Shown here one piece after another: positions 4,140 through 18,680 of a stretch of 18,680 nucleotides of DNA; position 1 is the first letter of the stretch, and each line of letters opens with the position of its first letter. A program made the translations under genes and the position numbers. Location of the stretch: the NCBI GenBank assembly GCA_024626585.2, contig JANKJI020000002.1:261421835-261440514 (forward strand), in the 5' to 3' direction. The notes under the pieces are model-generated. The model was not told the origin of the DNA, did not search any database, and saw nothing but the letters and a program-made list of their open reading frames with translations. Origin of the DNA: Ginkgo biloba (taxonomy: Eukaryota; Plantae; Ginkgophyta).

Positions 4140-4855
4140 CTGCGAGTTTAGATGAGACAAAAAAAAAGAGTAATTTTCTATCGATTTTTATATTTATCTT
4201 GTGATTCACGGTGGACCATAGTGAACTCATGGTAAATCAATGAAAACCATGGCGTTTGACGTGGCAGATTAGAAATGGGTACTGCGTTCTTGAATCTTCC
4301 TGCGCATTTAGATGAGACAAAAAGAGTAATTTCCTATCAATTTTTATATTTAACGTGTGGTTCACGGTGGACCATAGTGAACTAATGGTCAATGACAACC
4401 ATGGCGTTTGACGTGGCAGATTAGAAATGGGTAATTGTGTGTTTTCTTTGAATCTTCCCGCGCATTTAGATGAGACAAAAAAAGTAGTTTCCTATCAATT
4501 TTTATTTAATTTGTGGTTCACGGTGGACCATAGTAAACTAATGGTCAATGACAACCATAGCATTTGACGAAAAATGTTTTCCTTGAATCTTCCTGTGCAT
4601 TTAGATGAGACAAAAAGAGTAATTTCCTATCAATTTTTATTTAACTTGTGGTTCACAGTGGACCATAGTGAACTAATGGTCAATGACAACCATGGCATTT
4701 GACGTGGCAGATTAGAAAAGCGTTTTCCTTGAATCTTCCCGTGCATTTAGATGAGACAAAAAGAGTAATTTCTTATCGATTTTTATATTTAACTTGTGGT
4801 TCACGGTGGACCATATTGAACTAATAAAGGTCAATGACAACCATGGCGTTTGACA
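4140..4855. repeat. Tandem array of five ~135-160-bp units
   Basis: The anchor gatgagacaaaa recurs at 4151, 4311, 4469, 4604 and 4750 (spacings 160, 158, 135, 146). Each unit contains gtggttcacggtggaccatagtgaactaatggtcaatgacaaccatggcgtttgac with few changes. Confidence 0.95.
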
Positions 4856-7889: not shown

Positions 7890-8610
7890 GCACATCAATC
7901 CAAAATAGTCGTCAATACCTTCTATTTAACCTGCATCCTAAAGGTGAAGAGACCCTCAATGTCCTTGCTCTTCTCTTTGGTTTTAAAAAGATTTATAGTA
8001 AAATATGGCTCATCAAAAGTGACAATAAAATCATTCAATTATTTCTTCCTTTTATGTTTCTTCTTTCCTTGATACAACAATATAGGTTCCTTCTCAAGAT
8101 GAAGCTTTAAAAAATTAGCTTCATCGCGTCGAACCTTACCACAGTGCCCGCATTTATTTTACTTATCAAATCTTATACTCTTCTTAACTTTATTCAAAGA
8201 AGTATATGATGATGTAAAATTAAGCTTTGGCTTGACCTTACCCTAGAATTTTTTTGAATCTTCCTCCTAGATTTAATCTTGGAAACAAACCCATATGCCT
8301 CTTGTAGGCTATGAATAGAAAAAAATTCTAGTTCATGCCTAAGATGATTATGTAAACCTCTAATAAACATTAGTATCATCTTGTTGTTTGATTCCTTAAT
8401 ATCCAACTAAGTTGTGAGATTTTGATACTCTTCATAATAATACTCTAAACTCTATCTTTGACCCTACTTGAGATGATGCCATTTGAAGAAAATTCATCCT
8501 TATATCCACGAGGATAATTTTATTTTTTCAAGTCCTTCTTAAAATCACTTAAAGAAGAAATAGGTAACTTCCCTACCTGCTCTCCGGTCATACAAAAATA
8601 CTCCCACTAA
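7890..8610 (-). mobile_element. Degenerate Ty3/gypsy gag (capsid C-half and zinc knuckle) running into the start of the protease region
   Basis: The minus strand reads L*WEYFCM...FKKDLKK*NYPRGY...KWHHLK*GQR*SLEYYYEEY...MFIRGLHNHLRHELEFFSIHSLQEAYGFVSKI, then a decayed CCHC knuckle KCGHCGKVRRDEANF-LKLH (~8100-8160), then EGLFTFRMQVK (~7925-7960). Many stops and frameshifts. Confidence 0.75.
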
Positions 8611-10080: not shown

Positions 10081-10868
10081 ATTCCGTCAAGAGACATGAT
10101 AAAATATTTTAGATTATATTGTGACAATCGGGATATAATAAATACCAATTATTATTTAATTTTTAATATTTCTCATTTTATGATTTTTATATGCGGTTGT
10201 TGGATGGATAGTCTACTCAATTTTTTGGAGTACAGTATATAGATATAGGAGTACATAAAACAATAGTAACAGTATCTCACCAAAAGGAAGAGATGAAGGC
10301 CAAGTGCTTTCAAACTCAGAGAGGTAATAGAAGAACATAGATTGCTGTTTTTCTTCGAGTCTTCATATGGAATAATATATTATCATTTCTNNNNNNNNNN
10401 NNNNNNNNNNNNNNNNNNNNNNNNNNNNNNNNNNNNNNNNNNNNNNNNNNNNNNNNNNNNNNNNNNNNNNNNNNNNNNNNNNNNNNNNNNNNNNNNNNNN
10501 NNNNNNNNNNNNNNNNNNNNNNNNNNNNNNNNNNNNNNNNNNNNNNNNNNNNNNNNNNNNNNNNNNNNNNNNNNNNNNNNNNNNNNNNNNNNNNNNNNNN
10601 NNNNNNNNNNNNNNNNNNNNNNNNNNNNNNNNNNNNNNNNNNNNNNNNNNNNNNNNNNNNNNNNNNNNNNNNNNNNNNNNNNNNNNNNNNNNNNNNNNNC
10701 TCTCAAATCTCCAAAAGGCTTTAATCCCTCCAACAACATCCCTAGCCAATCCTTCAAATACCTGCTCCCGTATTCTCTACAAAGATCACGGCATAACCAA
10801 TTGAGTCAATTTAATAAATCTGGACCAAGACTGTGAAATCGCAGTCAAACCAAAGGATTGTTTCCTTC

Positions 10869-11159
10869 TTATTGATAAGGTCCTGGCGAATGATCGGGTG
10901 GAGGTTTTCTATTTCTGATTCTGTTGCACAGATAAAGCAGGAGTGCAAGGAGAAGCAACAGTACTCCTGCCGGCAAAGCTGATACTAAAGCTATGCTTCT
11001 GGTGCTCCATTTTTTACTATCGGGGATCTTAGGAGGTGACTGGGGAGCAGATGATGAAGTGCAATTGTTACAACAGTTAAGATCAACGAAGGTCATGTTG
11101 CCAGTCCTAGGGCAGACTACTTTGGACCCCTCACAAAAAGGACAAATATTATTTGACGC
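10869..11159 (-). CDS. Terminal exon: 6-Cys module, Ser/Pro stalk, single transmembrane helix, short basic/Pro-rich cytoplasmic tail, stop codon
   Basis: Acceptor tctctgtgcag|GCG at 11159, phase 0 as required. 96 codons + TAA (10871-10869): ASNNICPFCEGSKVVCPRTGNMTFVDLNCCNNCTSSSAPQSPPKIPDSKKWSTR-SIALVSALPAGVLLLLLALLLYLC-NRIRNRKPPPDHSPGPYQ*. The hydrophobic 24-mer (10926-10997) is followed by a positive-inside cluster. The preceding intron is 276 nt (11160-11435). Confidence 0.85.
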   Translation of the reverse strand, partial: ASNNICPFCEGSKVVCPRTGNMTFVDLNCCNNCTSSSAPQSPPKIPDSKKWSTRSIALVSALPAGVLLLLLALLLYLCNRIRNRKPPPDHSPGPYQ

Positions 11160-11435
11160 CTGCACAGAGAAGGAACGAAATTGTCAGTAAATTATACTGA
11201 ATTCCAGGTGAAAATGGAGAATCAAGTAATCTTTCAGTATATGGTTTAACAATGGTTAGTAGCTGGTTTTATGATGAAAAATCTTAAATCTGTAGTGGAC
11301 CCAATAACTGAAAGTTATAGCCATATTGAGCCAGCTTTTGCGCAACAATAACAGTATAAGAAAAAGTGCAATACATTAGTATCCAAAAAAAAAAAGAAGT
11401 TGAGTTTTTTAACAATGTGCGTTTATCTTGCTTAC

Positions 11436-11581
11436 CCCTACACGAGCATCCAGTGTAGCATTGGGATTGTTTGGTCGTCTACCAGAACGGTAACCAAGAA
11501 TGGTGGGCAAATTATTTAGGACTGACTGCAAAAGAATATCAATTGCAGCTACCCCAATGAGATGGCCTTTTGAATTAACAA
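11436..11581 (-). CDS. Internal exon of the same gene: Cache domain final beta-strands and linker (missed by the ORF track)
   Basis: Acceptor gaactgcag|TT at 11581, donor GTAGGG|gtaagc at 11436/11435. 146 nt completes the phase-1 split codon and ends in phase 0. Translation (V)VNSKGHLIGVAAIDILLQSVLNNLPTILGYRSGRRPNNPNATLDARVG contains the typical Cache GxLxGVxxxD(I/V) motif. The preceding intron is 94 nt (11582-11675). Confidence 0.88.
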
Positions 11582-11675
11582 CTGCAGTTCAAAACACGGA
11601 TCTGGTTAGAAGACTGAACATATTCCTGATAATGGATTTTGGAAATAGAATTTAAAATGAATTGCTTTCTATTAC

Positions 11676-12000
11676 CTTGATATGATACAGTAATGATGTT
11701 TCCAAGTTCACCATAATTCACATAATACTTAGTCCAATATGGTGTATCTTCTGAAGCGTTGCGTGCAAGTGCCATGAAATTGAAGTAGCTGCTTATTTGA
11801 TACAAAGGATTGTCAAAATTTGCATTTAAAATTTCAAAGTACCCACCCGCTTCTGTGGCAAGAAGTTTCAACATATCAGACTTATCAAAGCTATATGTAA
11901 AAAGCCTCGCGGACTGATTTTTAATCATTCCAGAGACGTGCTCTACATCTTCTGCCTGAAGCTGTGTTGCAAACCCACCACTTGTAAACAGCAATATGAC
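11676..12000 (-). CDS. Internal exon of an alpha2-delta/CACHD1-like VWA-dCache_1 membrane protein: C-terminal half of the VWA domain and start of the post-VWA Cache segment
   Basis: Acceptor tgtattatag|GTC at 12000; the TAG is an in-frame stop, which fixes the border. Donor CAAG|gtaat at 11676/11675. 325 nt = 108 codons + 1 nt. Translation VILLFTSGG...ARLFTYSF...LKLLATEAGGYFEI...SYFNFMAL...YWTKYYVNYGELGNIITVSYQ parallels alpha2delta-1 IIMLFTDGG...VRVFTFSV...IQWMACENKGYYYEI...EYLDVLGR...[21 protein letters not shown] (reference recalled, aligned by eye). Confidence 0.88.
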
Positions 12001-13665
12001 CTATAATACAACAGAAATAAGAAATTGCATGAGGAATAGTTCCAAAAACCTGCACACTCGTTGTGGTGTCTTCTTTCAACATGTCATGACAAATACCAGA
12101 CTATTTTTTAATTTCCTATTAATAAAAAGAATGCTTGCAAAATTATCCTGCTGCTGCTTTAGTGAACCTTAGGGTATGACTATTCAAATCAACCATAAAC
12201 ATTAACATACGTCATCTACCACAATAATTTATCCATGCCTTTACGAAATATATCACAAGATAGTCACGATAATAGATCCCAAAGGGATTCTTTGAGTTCA
12301 CGAGTTCATAAAGAGACCTCCACAAGTCCACAAATGATCCACAACTCTACAAAGATTCCGAATTCAGAGTGATGATCACAAGTAAAACTCTTTTTGATTG
12401 CAAGTATATTTAAATCGCAAAATTCAGAGGATAAATAATTAAAAAGAGTAGACTGGACAATGGCTTGCATCCAACATTAGTCAAAATCTCTTGTTATATC
12501 ATGTAGGTGTTTTACCTAACCAATTTACCCATACAACCAAGAAGAATTACTTGACTAGATGAAACTCGGATTACTCAGCAACGCAATGGTACCCTAATTC
12601 CACTATAACAACTTTTATGTGTGAACCAAAATTTTACTAATTACCACTATTGAATTCAATTACTAAGACTCTAAAGACTAATGAAGAAAAAACCCCAACT
12701 TGTATTTCACAGTATAGACTATATCCAAGACAAAAGACAGATAGTGAAGAAGATGAACAACTAAGGCGAGAACCAATAACACCAGAGGCTATAGTCAGTA
12801 TTCCCTAAATCAGTTGCTTCTGATTGCATTGACTGTTCCAACAATTAAGAGTCTTAGTCTTTTGCTTCCTCCTCCATTGTGTTACCCGAGTTGTGGGGAG
12901 TTGCTTTGGGACTGGGACTTCTTTCTTTTATCCTTAGAGCCAAGTTAGGCTGAGCAACACTGTCTTCCACTATCATTAGGTTCTTAGCATGCTTAGTCTA
13001 TATGTCACCTTCCTCCAACACAGTGGATCAAATTTGATCTTGTGGCATGTCTTGTATTGTGCTTGTGCCCTTTAAAAACTAAGAATTACTGCCTATTCAT
13101 GAATTAGTCCCCAATTCTACAATTCAATTCATAGAGGCAACAGTCAACACGTCTAATCTCCTTTCTTTGGTTGAGAAAGGCTTGATGAACTCTCATGAAC
13201 AAGTGCATTTGAATGAGCCGGCACAGTGTGTCAACTCGTAGCATTTAAGTTACCACCTTGTTGACTTGGAAAATGAATTCAATGATAAAATGTTCTACGC
13301 CCAAAACCAATACTTTTGTGTACTCAAGCATTGTTGTGTCTAACAATCTCCCTTCTTACTGATCTGTTTCTGGATCCAAAGGAACAACGAATGGCAATAA
13401 AGGATGGATGGAGTCAGAACAAGTGAGATATTTGTGTATGAGATGCAAGTCAATCGCAAGGCATAGGTTTTGTCGGTCAACAATGGGAAAAACGGTGTCA
13501 CTATTGGTATTTCAAGAGACCAGGTGTCGTAGATTTGTGTAATGTTTAAAACGAGGAACGTTCAACAAAAGCCCAAAGTTAGAAGTGAACTAAAATCCTT
13601 GTGAACTTGTTGGAAACTTGGTGGCTTAAGTGAAGTCCAACAACCAACTAATGCTGGAGTATGAA

Positions 13666-13797
13666 AGTTCGTCATTGTCAGTGAATGGTGCAAAGCCAAG
13701 TTCATCGTTGTCAACGAATGGTGCAAAGACAAGCCTGTCGTTGTTGGCGAAAGGTGCAAAGATGAATTCATCATTGTTAGCGGATGGAGTAAAGACA
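13666..13797. repeat. 33-bp minisatellite, 4 diverged copies
   Basis: ggtgcaaag/ggagtaaag at 13687, 13720, 13753 and 13786 (exact 33-bp period). The + frame reads SSSLSVNGAKP SSSLSTNGAKT SLSLLAKGAKM NSSLLADGVKT. Confidence 0.9.
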
Positions 13798-15249
13798 GGT
13801 TCGGGTGTCAGAGAGTTAAGTGACGCTGCACCTTCTCAAAAGTTTCGAAGTGGTAGACCCAACAAGGATTGAAATACGGTTATATCAGGACTCGAGGAAA
13901 CTAAAGGAGCGTTATGCGACACTTATTGGACAGACCAACATCAAACATCACATCTCTAAATGACAAAACCCCAAACTTGTACCTTCCAAGAGAGGGTCCC
14001 ATGGTGACCGAGGAAATAAGGCAGATGGTTACCAACGGTTCAACTACTCTGAGCGGTTACGGTAACTGAAGCGACACTCGAGAAAAAAGAAGATAGACAG
14101 AGAGGACACTCTGATGAAGACAGGGCCTTGATGGAACAAAGGGAGAAATAATTGTGGAAGAAAAAGGCTCTCACTCAGACAAAGAGGACATTCTGACGAC
14201 AACAGGGAGAGGAATCGCAAAGAGTTGAGAGAGGCGAAGACACTAAACGAAGGTTCTGTTATAGGATGGTTCAACTGCTCTAGGCAATTTGAGTAACTGA
14301 ACAAACGGACATAACAAAGGGGGAACAATTTGCTTGTGTAGGGGGATGGACTCACACACTCACACTGACAAGAAGAGAAGGATTTCACACTCAAAGAAGA
14401 GACTGTGAGAGGGATCTCACCCCAATAGCAAGCAGAGAGCGANNNNNNNNNNNNNNNNNNNNNNNNNNNNNNNNNNNNNNNNNNNNNNNNNNNNNNNNNN
14501 NNNNNNNNNNNNNNNNNNNNNNNNNNNNNNNNNNNNNNNNNNNNNNNNNNNNNNNNNNNNNNNNNNNNNNNNNNNNNNNNNNNNNNNNNNNNNNNNNNNN
14601 NNNNNNNNNNNNNNNNNNNNNNNNNNNNNNNNNNNNNNNNNNNNNNNNNNNNNNNNNNNNNNNNNNNNNNNNNNNNNNNNNNNNNNNNNNNNNNNNNNNN
14701 NNNNNNNNNNNNNNNNNNNNNNNNNNNNNNNNNNNNNNNNNNNNNNNNNNNNNNNNNNNNNNNNNNNNNNNNNNNNNNNNNNNNNNNNNNNNNNNNNNNN
14801 NNNNNNNNNNNNNNNNNNNNNNNNNNNNNNNNNTATGATTTTAGACACAGGAATGTTTCTTTAAAGAATCTATAGTTAGTAACATTGGGAGATTTTGACT
14901 CACCCACTGAGATACGGATCACTTGCTTATATTGATTTGCTGCACCCAAGACTCTCATCACTTGCAAGAACATATTCAACTCCCTTGCTTTCTAATCAAT
15001 TATCTTCCTTAACTTATATATCTTTCTTTCTACACGGTATTAATCATACGCACTTATCAATACTCTGAAGTAGGTGAGAAATGTCAGGGCCCAATCCATA
15101 CTATTAAGACTTATAGTAACTAAGTATTTGTTGTTGTGACTATGAATAGCTATGCAATTTCGGCTTATCATTACCCTTTATAGGTGATGTATCCTTGATG
15201 AGGTACACTAAAGGTGTGACTTTTAGTTATGCAAAAGCATCTAAACAAG

Positions 15250-15890
15250 CTCAAGGATGCACCGTTGTATTGTTAAGTTTGCACAATAAACTCTTTCTTC
15301 TTGCTAAATCCCAAGCCTGAAACTAATTTTTTGCACTAAAGGGAAAAGGCATGGCATCCTGCATTGTGTAGCAACTTTACCTACCTGCATCATGGACTTT
15401 CCTAAAGGTAGTGTAGTATATTTTTCCTACAACCTGATAGCCCAAAGAGAATCTTCCAAACACGTGCAAAATCTCGCATGTGGACCGATGCTACAACCTG
15501 ATAGAATCTTAAATAACCTTCATATGCACACATAGTTTCCCAAATCCTCATATAGGATTCCTCATGGTCATATCCCTTACAATAATCAACCCCATGGGAC
15601 CACATTCTATGCCCCCCCTATTGCCTAATGACATATCACTTTGTTCCCTGGCAAATAAATACTTAAGGGCCTCCACAAAAATAACAAAAAGTAAGGGAAC
15701 TAAAGGAGAACCTTCTCAATTAGACATCTATATGGGGATTACCTAGGAGAGTGCCCATCACTCTTACTAAAGCATGAGACAAGAGTGCCTAAACTATATT
15801 ACAAAAATAATTCTTGAATCCCACTCTTTATAGAATGAAGAATATGAAATTTAACTAAACCTTGTCATATGCCTTCTTAAAATTCTTTTG
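15250..15890 (-). mobile_element. Degenerate LINE (L1-like) reverse transcriptase fragment
   Basis: Minus strand NFKKAYDKV (~15859-15885) matches the D(F)xKAYDxV RT motif. *EGSPLVPLLFVIFVEAL (~15666-15720) matches RQGCPLSPLLFxIxxEAL, in the right order and at plausible spacing. Interrupted by stops; the lower boundary is approximate. Confidence 0.8.
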
Positions 15891-16804
15891 AAAAAAAAGA
15901 GATTTTGAAAGTAATATTAATGGTATGTATGATTATTGTTATATTAATGGCTATATTCCAAATGCAATGGATTTAAAATAAAAATGTATTAGAAAGATTC
16001 TTTAGTGGATTACATGGTGAAAATAAGTAGCTANNNNNNNNNNNNNNNNNNNNNNNNNNNNNNNNNNNNNNNNNNNNNNNNNNNNNNNNNNNNNNNNNNN
16101 NNNNNNNNNNNNNNNNNNNNNNNNNNNNNNNNNGTATATGCCCTAGAAATCTCAACACAAGATCCATAAGAGTTTTGAGGCCATTTTGAGGAGGCAAATG
16201 TAATTGCAACATTTATGGCATCAAACTCACAAAAACTATTTACATATTTGGAAATTTCAAATTCTTCTACTCAAATCCCATCTAAGGAGCATCAAAATTG
16301 TCTACTATATTATCCTATAAGCACTCCTGGAAAACAATGCAATTTTTGGAGTGAATTTTAGGATTTCCACTAATGTGCGATAGAAACTGGGTTATTCTTA
16401 CCATTTATTTTATTTTTATAAAATATTTTTGCACTACCAGAAAGCTCAGTCTATGATATTCAAAATTATAAAAATCACCAACCTCATTTGGATTTTAGAA
16501 GCTCTTGTGGCATTGGAAACAATTTGGTTGCTATTTTAAGGCCTAATTTTAGAGTTCAAACTGATAAAATTTTATGAAGCAATCAACATTTGTAGATATT
16601 TTTTCATATTTGGGTAGATCAGATTCTGTTATTCAATTTTTATTTAAAGAACTTCAAATTTGGTTGGCCAATGACTCTATAGAAACTTCTCAACGATACT
16701 TTTGAGCCATTTTTTTCAAAAGGGTGATTTTAACAGTGGAACTAGTTAGTGTTGGAAACAAATTCACAAAATAATGGAGGGAATTCGTATGTTAAAGATT
16801 ATGT

Positions 16805-17230
16805 ATGGAAGATGAATATGTATGCAGTGTTGAATGGCTAATTATGTTAGAGGATTGCTTTGTCATTCATCCTATGACAGATGAAGAAAAAATTGAATTT
16901 TTTAATCTTCATATGGGAGGCTATAGTGGTAAGGACACATACAAATGGTTTACAAGGTGGAAGCAATGTGAGAGTACATATTCCCACTATGTTTTTCTAA
17001 TTAAAAATATGTTTTTCTAATTAATGGGGAGAGTACATATTTCCACTAAAAAAAGAACATTAGAGGATTACCATCATATGTTCCATATGTTAAAAGATAT
17101 AACATCAATAATATAGGAGGACATGTTGGATCTATATAGGGATGGCCTTGAGAATATTATAATGATTACAAAATTGACATTATCACTTCGAGAAAATTTG
17201 CCAAAAGCAATTAGAATGTCAATTGAACAA
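16805..17230 (+). mobile_element. Degenerate Ty3/gypsy gag-like fragment
   Basis: EWLIMLEDCFVIHPMTDEEKIEFFNLHMGG...YKWF fits the gag pattern W+..+E..F......EEK+.+..+H+.G.A..W. Disrupted by a local duplication at ~16970-17050. Confidence 0.6.
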
Positions 17231-17256
17231 ATTTTGGTTGTTGTTGGACAAAGGAA

Positions 17257-17440
17257 CCGACGAACATCGGAGTTACCTTAGACCGACACCGACATGCATC
17301 ATTCCACCGACGAATGTCGAAGTTGCCTTTGGTCGACACCAACACGAGTCGTTCTATCGATGAATGTCGGAGTAGTCTTCACTAACATGACATGAGTGAT
17401 CCTTGGACGACATCAATAGAGGTTCATTACGAACACCGAT
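17257..17440. repeat. 50-bp CpG-rich minisatellite, at least 3 copies, running into an N-run
   Basis: ccgacgaacatcggagtt / ccgacgaatgtcgaagtt / tcgatgaatgtcggagta start at 17257, 17307 and 17357. Confidence 0.85.
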
Positions 17441-18523
17441 NNNNNNNNNNNNNNNNNNNNNNNNNNNNNNNNNNNNNNNNNNNNNNNNNNNNNNNNNNNN
17501 NNNNNNNNNNNNNNNNNNNNNNNNNNNNNNNNNNNNNNNNAGAAACCCTGGTTATAATTCATAATTTCCTTTGTGCAAAATGAAAAATCAAACCCTCATT
17601 TCGTAAGGGAGACGTAAGAGGTAGAACTGTCAATAGAAATCAGTTTTAAACACCTGATGAAGAAAATAAAAAAAATGGGTGAGATAAAAACGTTGGAAGA
17701 GAATCGCGTGCATACATGCAGAGATTGTAGGCTATGGGCCGTTTGTTACACAGAGAAANNNNNNNNNNNNNNNNNNNNNNNNNNNNNNNAAGTTAAATCA
17801 CCGTAAGGCTGTGAGCATCCGTTGGAGGAACTAGAGGCGTAGAGAGAGGGAACTATCTACTACTGGGAGACGTGAACCAGTTGCATAGAGGGAAATCACC
17901 TAAAGAACCATAGGAGAAATGTCGTGAAAGGCTGCAGAGAAGTTTCACGACCCAGAGATGCACAAAGCAGAGAAGTTTTTAGGCACAACAAAGGTGCGCC
18001 AAAGGTTCAGGGGAAAAGAACTACATTGTGTGTAGAGAGGAAGAATAATGCGCAAGTAGATGCCTCACCACCGGGAAGAACAAGTGCTATGAGCACAAAC
18101 CCATGGAAAACTTTGTGTGCAGGTGCACACAGAAGAAGAAATCACCGCGCAGAGAAGCCAAATACGTTGAAAATTGGGAGATTTCGTAGAAAAGTTCTGC
18201 GCAGGTCAAAATCCACGCCGCGATTCAAAAAATCAAAAATTCTATGTGCAGCACTGAAATCGAGCGCCCGATAAAATGATTTGGAATATTCTTGGAAATA
18301 TTTATTTTTTAATTTGACCCCTTTTGTAATGTTTTATTAAAAACTCAATTGTTAGTGTAAAATGGGGCTTTTTTTTATCTTAAAAATTTTAGAAAAATTC
18401 TAAAAAAAAATTTCTAAGAGTTTTTACACCCTTTTGCAGTTCAAAAAGCAAAAAGAAACACATAAAGCATGTTTTTTCACTTTTTTAATATCCATTTGGT
18501 GAATTTGTTTACTTCTTTGCATC

Positions 18524-18680
18524 ATGGCTGCAAATCTTGTAAATGCTCTTACAGAGAAATTAATTGGTACTGAAAATTTTAGTACTTGGAAGCACTAGAT
18601 CAAAATTTTAATGTTATTAAATGATCCATGGGGCTAGATTGATGTAACCACCATTAGACATGCAACTGACACAACAACTC
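18524..18680 (+). mobile_element. Ty1/copia gag N-terminus, pseudogenised; ~17540-18520 is probably its 5' leader
   Basis: ATG at 18524: MAANLVNALTEKLIGTENFSTWKH*IKILMLLNDPWG*IDV matches the copia gag KLxGxxN(F/Y)xxWK...LL...DLW motif, with two in-frame stops. Confidence 0.8.

Follow-up and report, generated by a model that had tools for sequence, protein, structure and literature searches.

Proteins that combine one dCache_1 domain with a VWA domain occur in diverse eukaryotes, include kinase fusions in streptophytes and are absent from angiosperms, and the alpha2delta cluster is restricted to metazoans (Gumerov et al. 2022; PMC8915833). Supplementary file 5 of the corresponding preprint (10.1101/2021.05.05.442820) lists kinase-less members from Selaginella, Marchantia, Physcomitrium, Chara, Klebsormidium, Osmunda and the cycad Dioon edule; Ginkgo, Picea, Pinus and Taxus were not found in that supplement. 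A VWA-RLK family has also been catalogued in eight bryophytes by metaRLK 2.0 (PMC13174206), and neither Cache nor VWA is mentioned in two receptor surveys (PMC10834447, PMC12757656). An incomplete literature search returned no functional study of a plant member, including of what it senses, and no ligand data for any of them. The preliminary description of the present locus had regarded it as an uncatalogued orphan. Since the Gumerov supplement (with its kinase-less members, Dioon edule among them) and metaRLK 2.0 already list the family, that view had to be given up; the absence from flowering plants that it put forward is as reported in PMC8915833.

The window analyzed here is a stretch of 18,680 nucleotides of Ginkgo biloba DNA, on the minus strand of which lie three exons covering under half of the protein. 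Exon A (11676..12000; 325 nt, encoding 108 residues plus one nucleotide) comprises the C-terminal half of the VWA domain and the return into the Cache module, contains the sequons NQS and NAS, and is flanked by AG at 12002-12001 and GT at 11675. Intron 1 (11582..11675; 94 nt, GT-AG, phase 1) separates it from exon B (11436..11581; 146 nt), which encodes the last Cache strand with the motif Asp, followed by a helix and a linker, and carries the sequon NAT. Intron 2 (11160..11435; 276 nt, GT-AG, phase 0), whose junction recurs in the model of the Ginkgo gene Gb_23298, leads to exon C (10869..11159; 291 nt including the TAA stop codon at 10871-10869), encoding a six-cysteine module, a stalk, the transmembrane (TM) helix and a tail of 22 residues. 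Frames were checked exon by exon and by arithmetic, and searches were run with single exons or with natural database proteins, Gb_23298, a natural protein with the same junctions, serving as a stand-in for the three joined exons. As claimed earlier, each exon is free of internal stops; the borders are GT-AG and the phases (0/1/0) mutually compatible. The earlier claim also holds that the five sequons (NQS, NAS, NAT, NMT and NCT) all lie N-terminal of the TM helix, which is followed by a short tail. The frame of exon A is open across the whole of intron 1 (ORF 11575-11994), so that, were this intron retained, the protein would be briefly extended and would end short of both the motif Asp and the TM helix.

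Searches with exon A returned 29 relatives among 1.84 billion representatives, the best of which were Ginkgo and Cryptomeria models without a kinase. The closest was Gb_23298, with identical residues at 101/108 positions in exon A, 44/48 in exon B and 44/47 in exon C (92-94%) and with similarity reaching into the flanks as well (15260-15508 and 10711-10755); from these identities we infer that the window gene is probably a recent paralogue of Gb_23298. Exon A is about 60% identical to Cryptomeria proteins, in the genes of which the corresponding exon is likewise 325 nt long and agrees in its phases. Other matches were Gb_23303, Gb_10461/Gb_13773, Gb_14993 and Cryptomeria LOC131033072 and SUGI_0767290, joined outside the gymnosperms by proteins of Psilotum, Marchantia, Riccia and Physcomitrium; a profile search (A1) yielded liverwort proteins only. 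The named exon A matches included no angiosperm, in agreement with the published loss although no proof of it. A tree built from the exon A region placed the window copy inside the gymnosperm clade with a support of 98/98. A non-plant origin of the sequence, a caveat of the preliminary description, was rejected, the best relatives being from Ginkgo and Cryptomeria and the closest being Gb_23298. The distant Ginkgo paralogue Gb_14993, which keeps TDG at the last MIDAS position, was placed by the tree apart from the gymnosperm clade; it may represent a different subfamily, perhaps one with a fused kinase. Two tandem family genes were seen on a JGI metagenome contig (L002; 245-1538 and 7176-11400), the second of which ends in a Cys module, TM helix, tail and stop codon and is thus kinase-less. 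The VWA-Cache kinase XP_024368104.1 of Physcomitrium is annotated 'THESEUS 1', a name that its ectodomain does not support.

Because single exons found no useful match in Pfam or in PDB sequence searches, the domain calls rest on relatives. These match the Pfam families VWA, MCP-like_PDC_1 and dCache_1. A family profile matched alpha2delta-1 (E 4e-30, over residues 160-501 only), CACHD1 (E 7e-12) and, weakly, the bacterial chemoreceptor PctA (E 8e-4); the full-length Cryptomeria protein alone matched alpha2delta-1 with an E of 3e-10, and an Atlas feature search placed exon A beside alpha2delta (0.92). The AF2 model of the ectodomain of the fern relative from Psilotum (pLDDT 81) superposed best on alpha2delta-1 (Foldseek 4e-20; VIA Z 29.5, rmsd 3.9 A over 385 residues) and second best on CACHD1 (Z 24.6). 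A single-sequence fold of exon A reached a pLDDT of 36 and was left out of the analysis. In the relatives, the VWA domain forms an insertion within the distal module of dCache_1, and the window exons share the residues of Gb_23298 to the extent given above. The window protein is therefore homologous to the VWA-split first dCache_1 of alpha2delta-1 and CACHD1; the kinship proposed in the preliminary description, and the structural match that it anticipated, were thus borne out, the latter on the Psilotum ectodomain.

The dCache_1AA amino-acid motif consists of two halves, both of which are ligand contacts in PctA. The C-terminal half, Y-x(27-34)-D, is present as Y-x29-D spanning intron 1: the Tyr equivalent to PctA Y144 is encoded at 11722..11724 and the Asp equivalent to PctA D173, 29 residues past the Tyr, at 11538..11540 (both minus strand). 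It represents the amino-group half of the motif and is kept in the window copy and in all gymnosperm members. The N-terminal, carboxyl-group half, YxxxxRxW, falls in an exon outside the window; Cryptomeria keeps it as YDPRTRPWY. The VWA domain does not carry a complete MIDAS (DxSxS...T...D). The first part of this site lies outside the window, and its last Asp is replaced by Ser (11980..11982, minus strand), giving TSG here and TNG in Gb_23298 and Cryptomeria (other members of the gymnosperm clade have Asn or Thr at this position), whereas alpha2delta-1 and most members from bryophytes read TDG.

The segment that separates the motif Asp from the TM helix measures 78-98 residues in all members and contains 4-6 cysteines; in the window protein it has 89 residues and six cysteines. 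The six-cysteine juxtamembrane module of the window protein (11061..11144, minus strand) occupies the place of a proximal Cache module. A second, membrane-proximal PDC module was not found: the Pfam matches of the relatives stop at positions 157-162 of the 240 of dCache_1, and in the Psilotum model the distal sheet is followed by a helix and a strand-less Cys segment, modeled at lower confidence. Only the distal Cache module thus seems to be present, and the proximal module of the first dCache_1 absent, a loss for which there is a bacterial precedent (PMC11804620). Used as query against the Atlas, the Cys module returned no match. With one Cache module in evidence, and not two nested dCache_1 domains, the full alpha2delta type proposed at the outset did not hold. 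A single C-terminal TM helix (10938..10994, minus strand; best 19-residue window, mean hydropathy 2.7) is followed by 22 residues, the tails of Cryptomeria SUGI_0767290 and Psilotum being 25 and 33 residues long. No cytoplasmic Ser/Thr kinase follows the TM helix and no kinase match was found in the window, in keeping with the single-pass, kinase-less architecture originally described. A hidden kinase exon was considered and rejected, since two relatives with a kinase, used as tblastn queries, had no match downstream and a kinase-bearing relative (locus L004) encodes its Cys module, TM helix and kinase in one exon. Family searches turned up no kinase-bearing gymnosperm member.

The three exons are a real gene fragment rather than a product of chance, as seen from their identity to relatives, the kept length of exon A, the dN/dS ratio and one skip of intron 1. 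Compared to Cryptomeria, exon A has a dN of about 0.27 and a dS of about 0.8; the resulting dN/dS of about 0.33 is a mark of selection on the lineage and not on the last branch of this copy. That the fragment is the 3' end of an intact Ginkgo gene, encoding a kinase-less member of the streptophyte VWA-Cache family with the architecture described above, we consider probable, if by no means assured. The main rival, which we hold to be unlikely, takes this copy for a recent duplicate, partial or decaying, that received the 3' exons together with their flanks, whose 5' exons are missing or disconnected and whose RNA is poorly spliced and 5'-truncated. Such an origin would fit the 92-94% identity to Gb_23298, itself modeled without true N-terminal exons, and the flanks that the two share. 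Every Ginkgo family model is, however, 5'-truncated, for which we propose giant introns as the reason: these account for truncation in Cryptomeria, where models extend over about 100 and 180 kb and one gene is apparently split into an N-half and a C-half model, the latter devoid of an upstream exon within 10 kb. Searches with family proteins, tblastn included, found no N-terminal family exon in the upstream intron of the window (12001..18680, minus strand; presumed long, with four N gaps totaling 622 nt), and given the 100-180 kb spanned in Cryptomeria, a long intron is the simple explanation.

The contigs of runs X1 and X9 bear on both readings. One X9 contig skips 11582-11675 exactly; the same contig, which starts at 12626, retains the upstream intron as well as intron 2, where the +5 base of the donor (11431) is changed, while the X1 contig is unspliced over its whole length. 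Splicing was seen in no examined contig at either the intron 2 junction or 12001. Of the two junctions put forward for verification, 11675/11582 was accordingly recovered, exactly, in one X9 contig, and 11435/11160 went unseen in the contigs examined. A duplicate with poorly spliced RNA would produce this picture, but that X1 and X9 are RNA is a guess, and contigs lose minority forms and may stem from pre-mRNA or DNA. Decay is also favored by the X1/X9 form of exon C, in which two replacement changes and, within the TM helix, an insertion of 3 nt stand against one silent change. Against decay, the 762 nt of exons contain no stop and no frameshift, exons A and B have zero variants in X1, X9 and X15, and the insertion leaves the frame intact. 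X15 agrees with the window sequence at every position and may be its source. The variant sites of the X1/X9 form are 10960-10961, 10973 and 11137, with 11431 in X9. At 10718 (region 10700-10755), the window and X15 diverge from the X1/X9 form, the continuation of which, as also the Gb_23298 model, reads RLILCRR in another frame. This peptide resembles RVLLCRR, with which Gb_23303 and Gb_10461 end their longer tails (post hoc shuffle p 0.005-0.016), and may be either the remnant of a longer tail or due to chance.

Other features of the window include a stretch of the upstream intron (13345-14440) that looks retroelement-like by eye, in which TG follows a purine-rich tract at about 13345 and a 33-nt unit occurs in four tandem copies at 13665-13796, and a tandem array at 4163-4855 (period about 135-156 nt, 3-4.6 copies, 84-86% matches). 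Broken ORFs at 8194-8480 and 15260-15605, without a Pfam match, appear by eye to be retrotransposon remnants, the second of which matches the atypical N-terminus of the Gb_23298 model (49%). The part at 15260-15508 was considered as an upstream exon and rejected, as the Gb_23298 N-terminus matching there is sequence unlike that of all other family members.

On the favored reading of an intact gene, N-terminal exons beyond the window, across the long intron, would supply a signal peptide, a Cys-rich region, the YDPRxRPWY half-motif and the first half of the VWA domain, and the product would be a glycosylated type I receptor-like protein of the plasma membrane. The pocket of its distal Cache module, which closes around the VWA insertion, might bind an apoplastic free amino acid or a similar amino-carboxylate. 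With a tail of only 22 residues, the protein would have to hand the signal on to a partner, for which a receptor kinase, for instance a kinase-fused paralogue, is the most plausible candidate. This amino-acid receptor-like reading is supported by the pocket residues and by the existence of kinase-fused relatives, and sensing of amino acids through a partner kinase is, on such sequence grounds, a possibility that we would place somewhat short of even. An intact accessory subunit or co-receptor similar to CACHD1 or alpha2delta, the VWA and Cache surfaces of which would bind and traffic a membrane protein with any small ligand being secondary, appears improbable to us. The nearest solved folds are indeed those of accessory proteins, among them CACHD1 in complex with FZD5 and LRP6 (8s7c, 9eq6), the tail is too short for signaling alone and the VWA insertion is kept family-wide; yet the amino-acid motif has persisted across land plants alongside an eroded MIDAS (in gymnosperms its last Asp is Ser, Asn or Thr), there is no second dCache_1, and bryophytes fuse the same ectodomain to a kinase, as a sensor would. 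To our knowledge, land plants are without four-domain Cav alpha1 channels and hence offer no known Cav alpha1 partner. Least likely, and indeed very improbable despite the likeness to alpha2delta-1 in sequence and fold, is therefore a functional alpha2delta acting as auxiliary subunit of a plant calcium channel, given also the single Cache module, the incomplete MIDAS and the metazoan-only alpha2delta cluster (PMC8915833).

Extended beyond this locus, the favored reading would credit gymnosperms with an expanded clade of Cache-VWA receptor-like proteins that are kinase-less and single-module, have a six-cysteine module in place of the proximal Cache and act as apoplastic amino-acid or GABA receptors via partner kinases, a generalization we regard as doubtful enough to be offered tentatively. 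The perception of extracellular amino acids and GABA by plants has been explained only in part. If true, the proposal would point to a plant amino-acid sensing route apart from glutamate-receptor-like channels that was lost in flowering plants. Since the pocket carried by the family has been proven to bind amino acids in bacterial proteins and gabapentinoids in animal ones, and since the family has kinase-fused as well as kinase-less forms, binding is directly testable.

Compared to known systems, the window protein is closest to the streptophyte single dCache_1AA plus VWA proteins, with which it shares a VWA domain within one Cache, the Y..D half of the motif and a distribution among non-flowering plants; the listed Physcomitrium kinase XP_024368103.1 falls in the cluster of one exon A match. 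The difference is that Gumerov describes a dCache_1, whereas the model and profiles here indicate a distal module followed by a Cys module. Bryophyte VWA-RLKs (Physcomitrium XP_024368104.1, Riccia KAL2612061.1) share the ectodomain, the TM helix and the exon layout around exons A-C but bear a kinase after the TM helix, where the Ginkgo protein stops within 22 residues. In alpha2delta-1 and CACHD1, the first Cache is likewise split by a VWA domain, motif positions agree and a single C-terminal membrane anchor is found; these proteins are, however, about 1100 residues long, as opposed to about 600 in the plant family (580-660 in full-length relatives), which lacks the nested second dCache_1 and, here, the last MIDAS Asp. 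PctA and PctB, bacterial dCache_1AA chemoreceptors, have in common with the Ginkgo family the amino-acid motif and, for PctA, the weak profile match, and differ from it in that the latter has a VWA insertion, one TM helix instead of two, no proximal module and no signaling domain. The Ginkgo locus is thus not a new system but a new member of an already catalogued family, to which it adds a species record and two structural details, the single Cache module and the eroded MIDAS.
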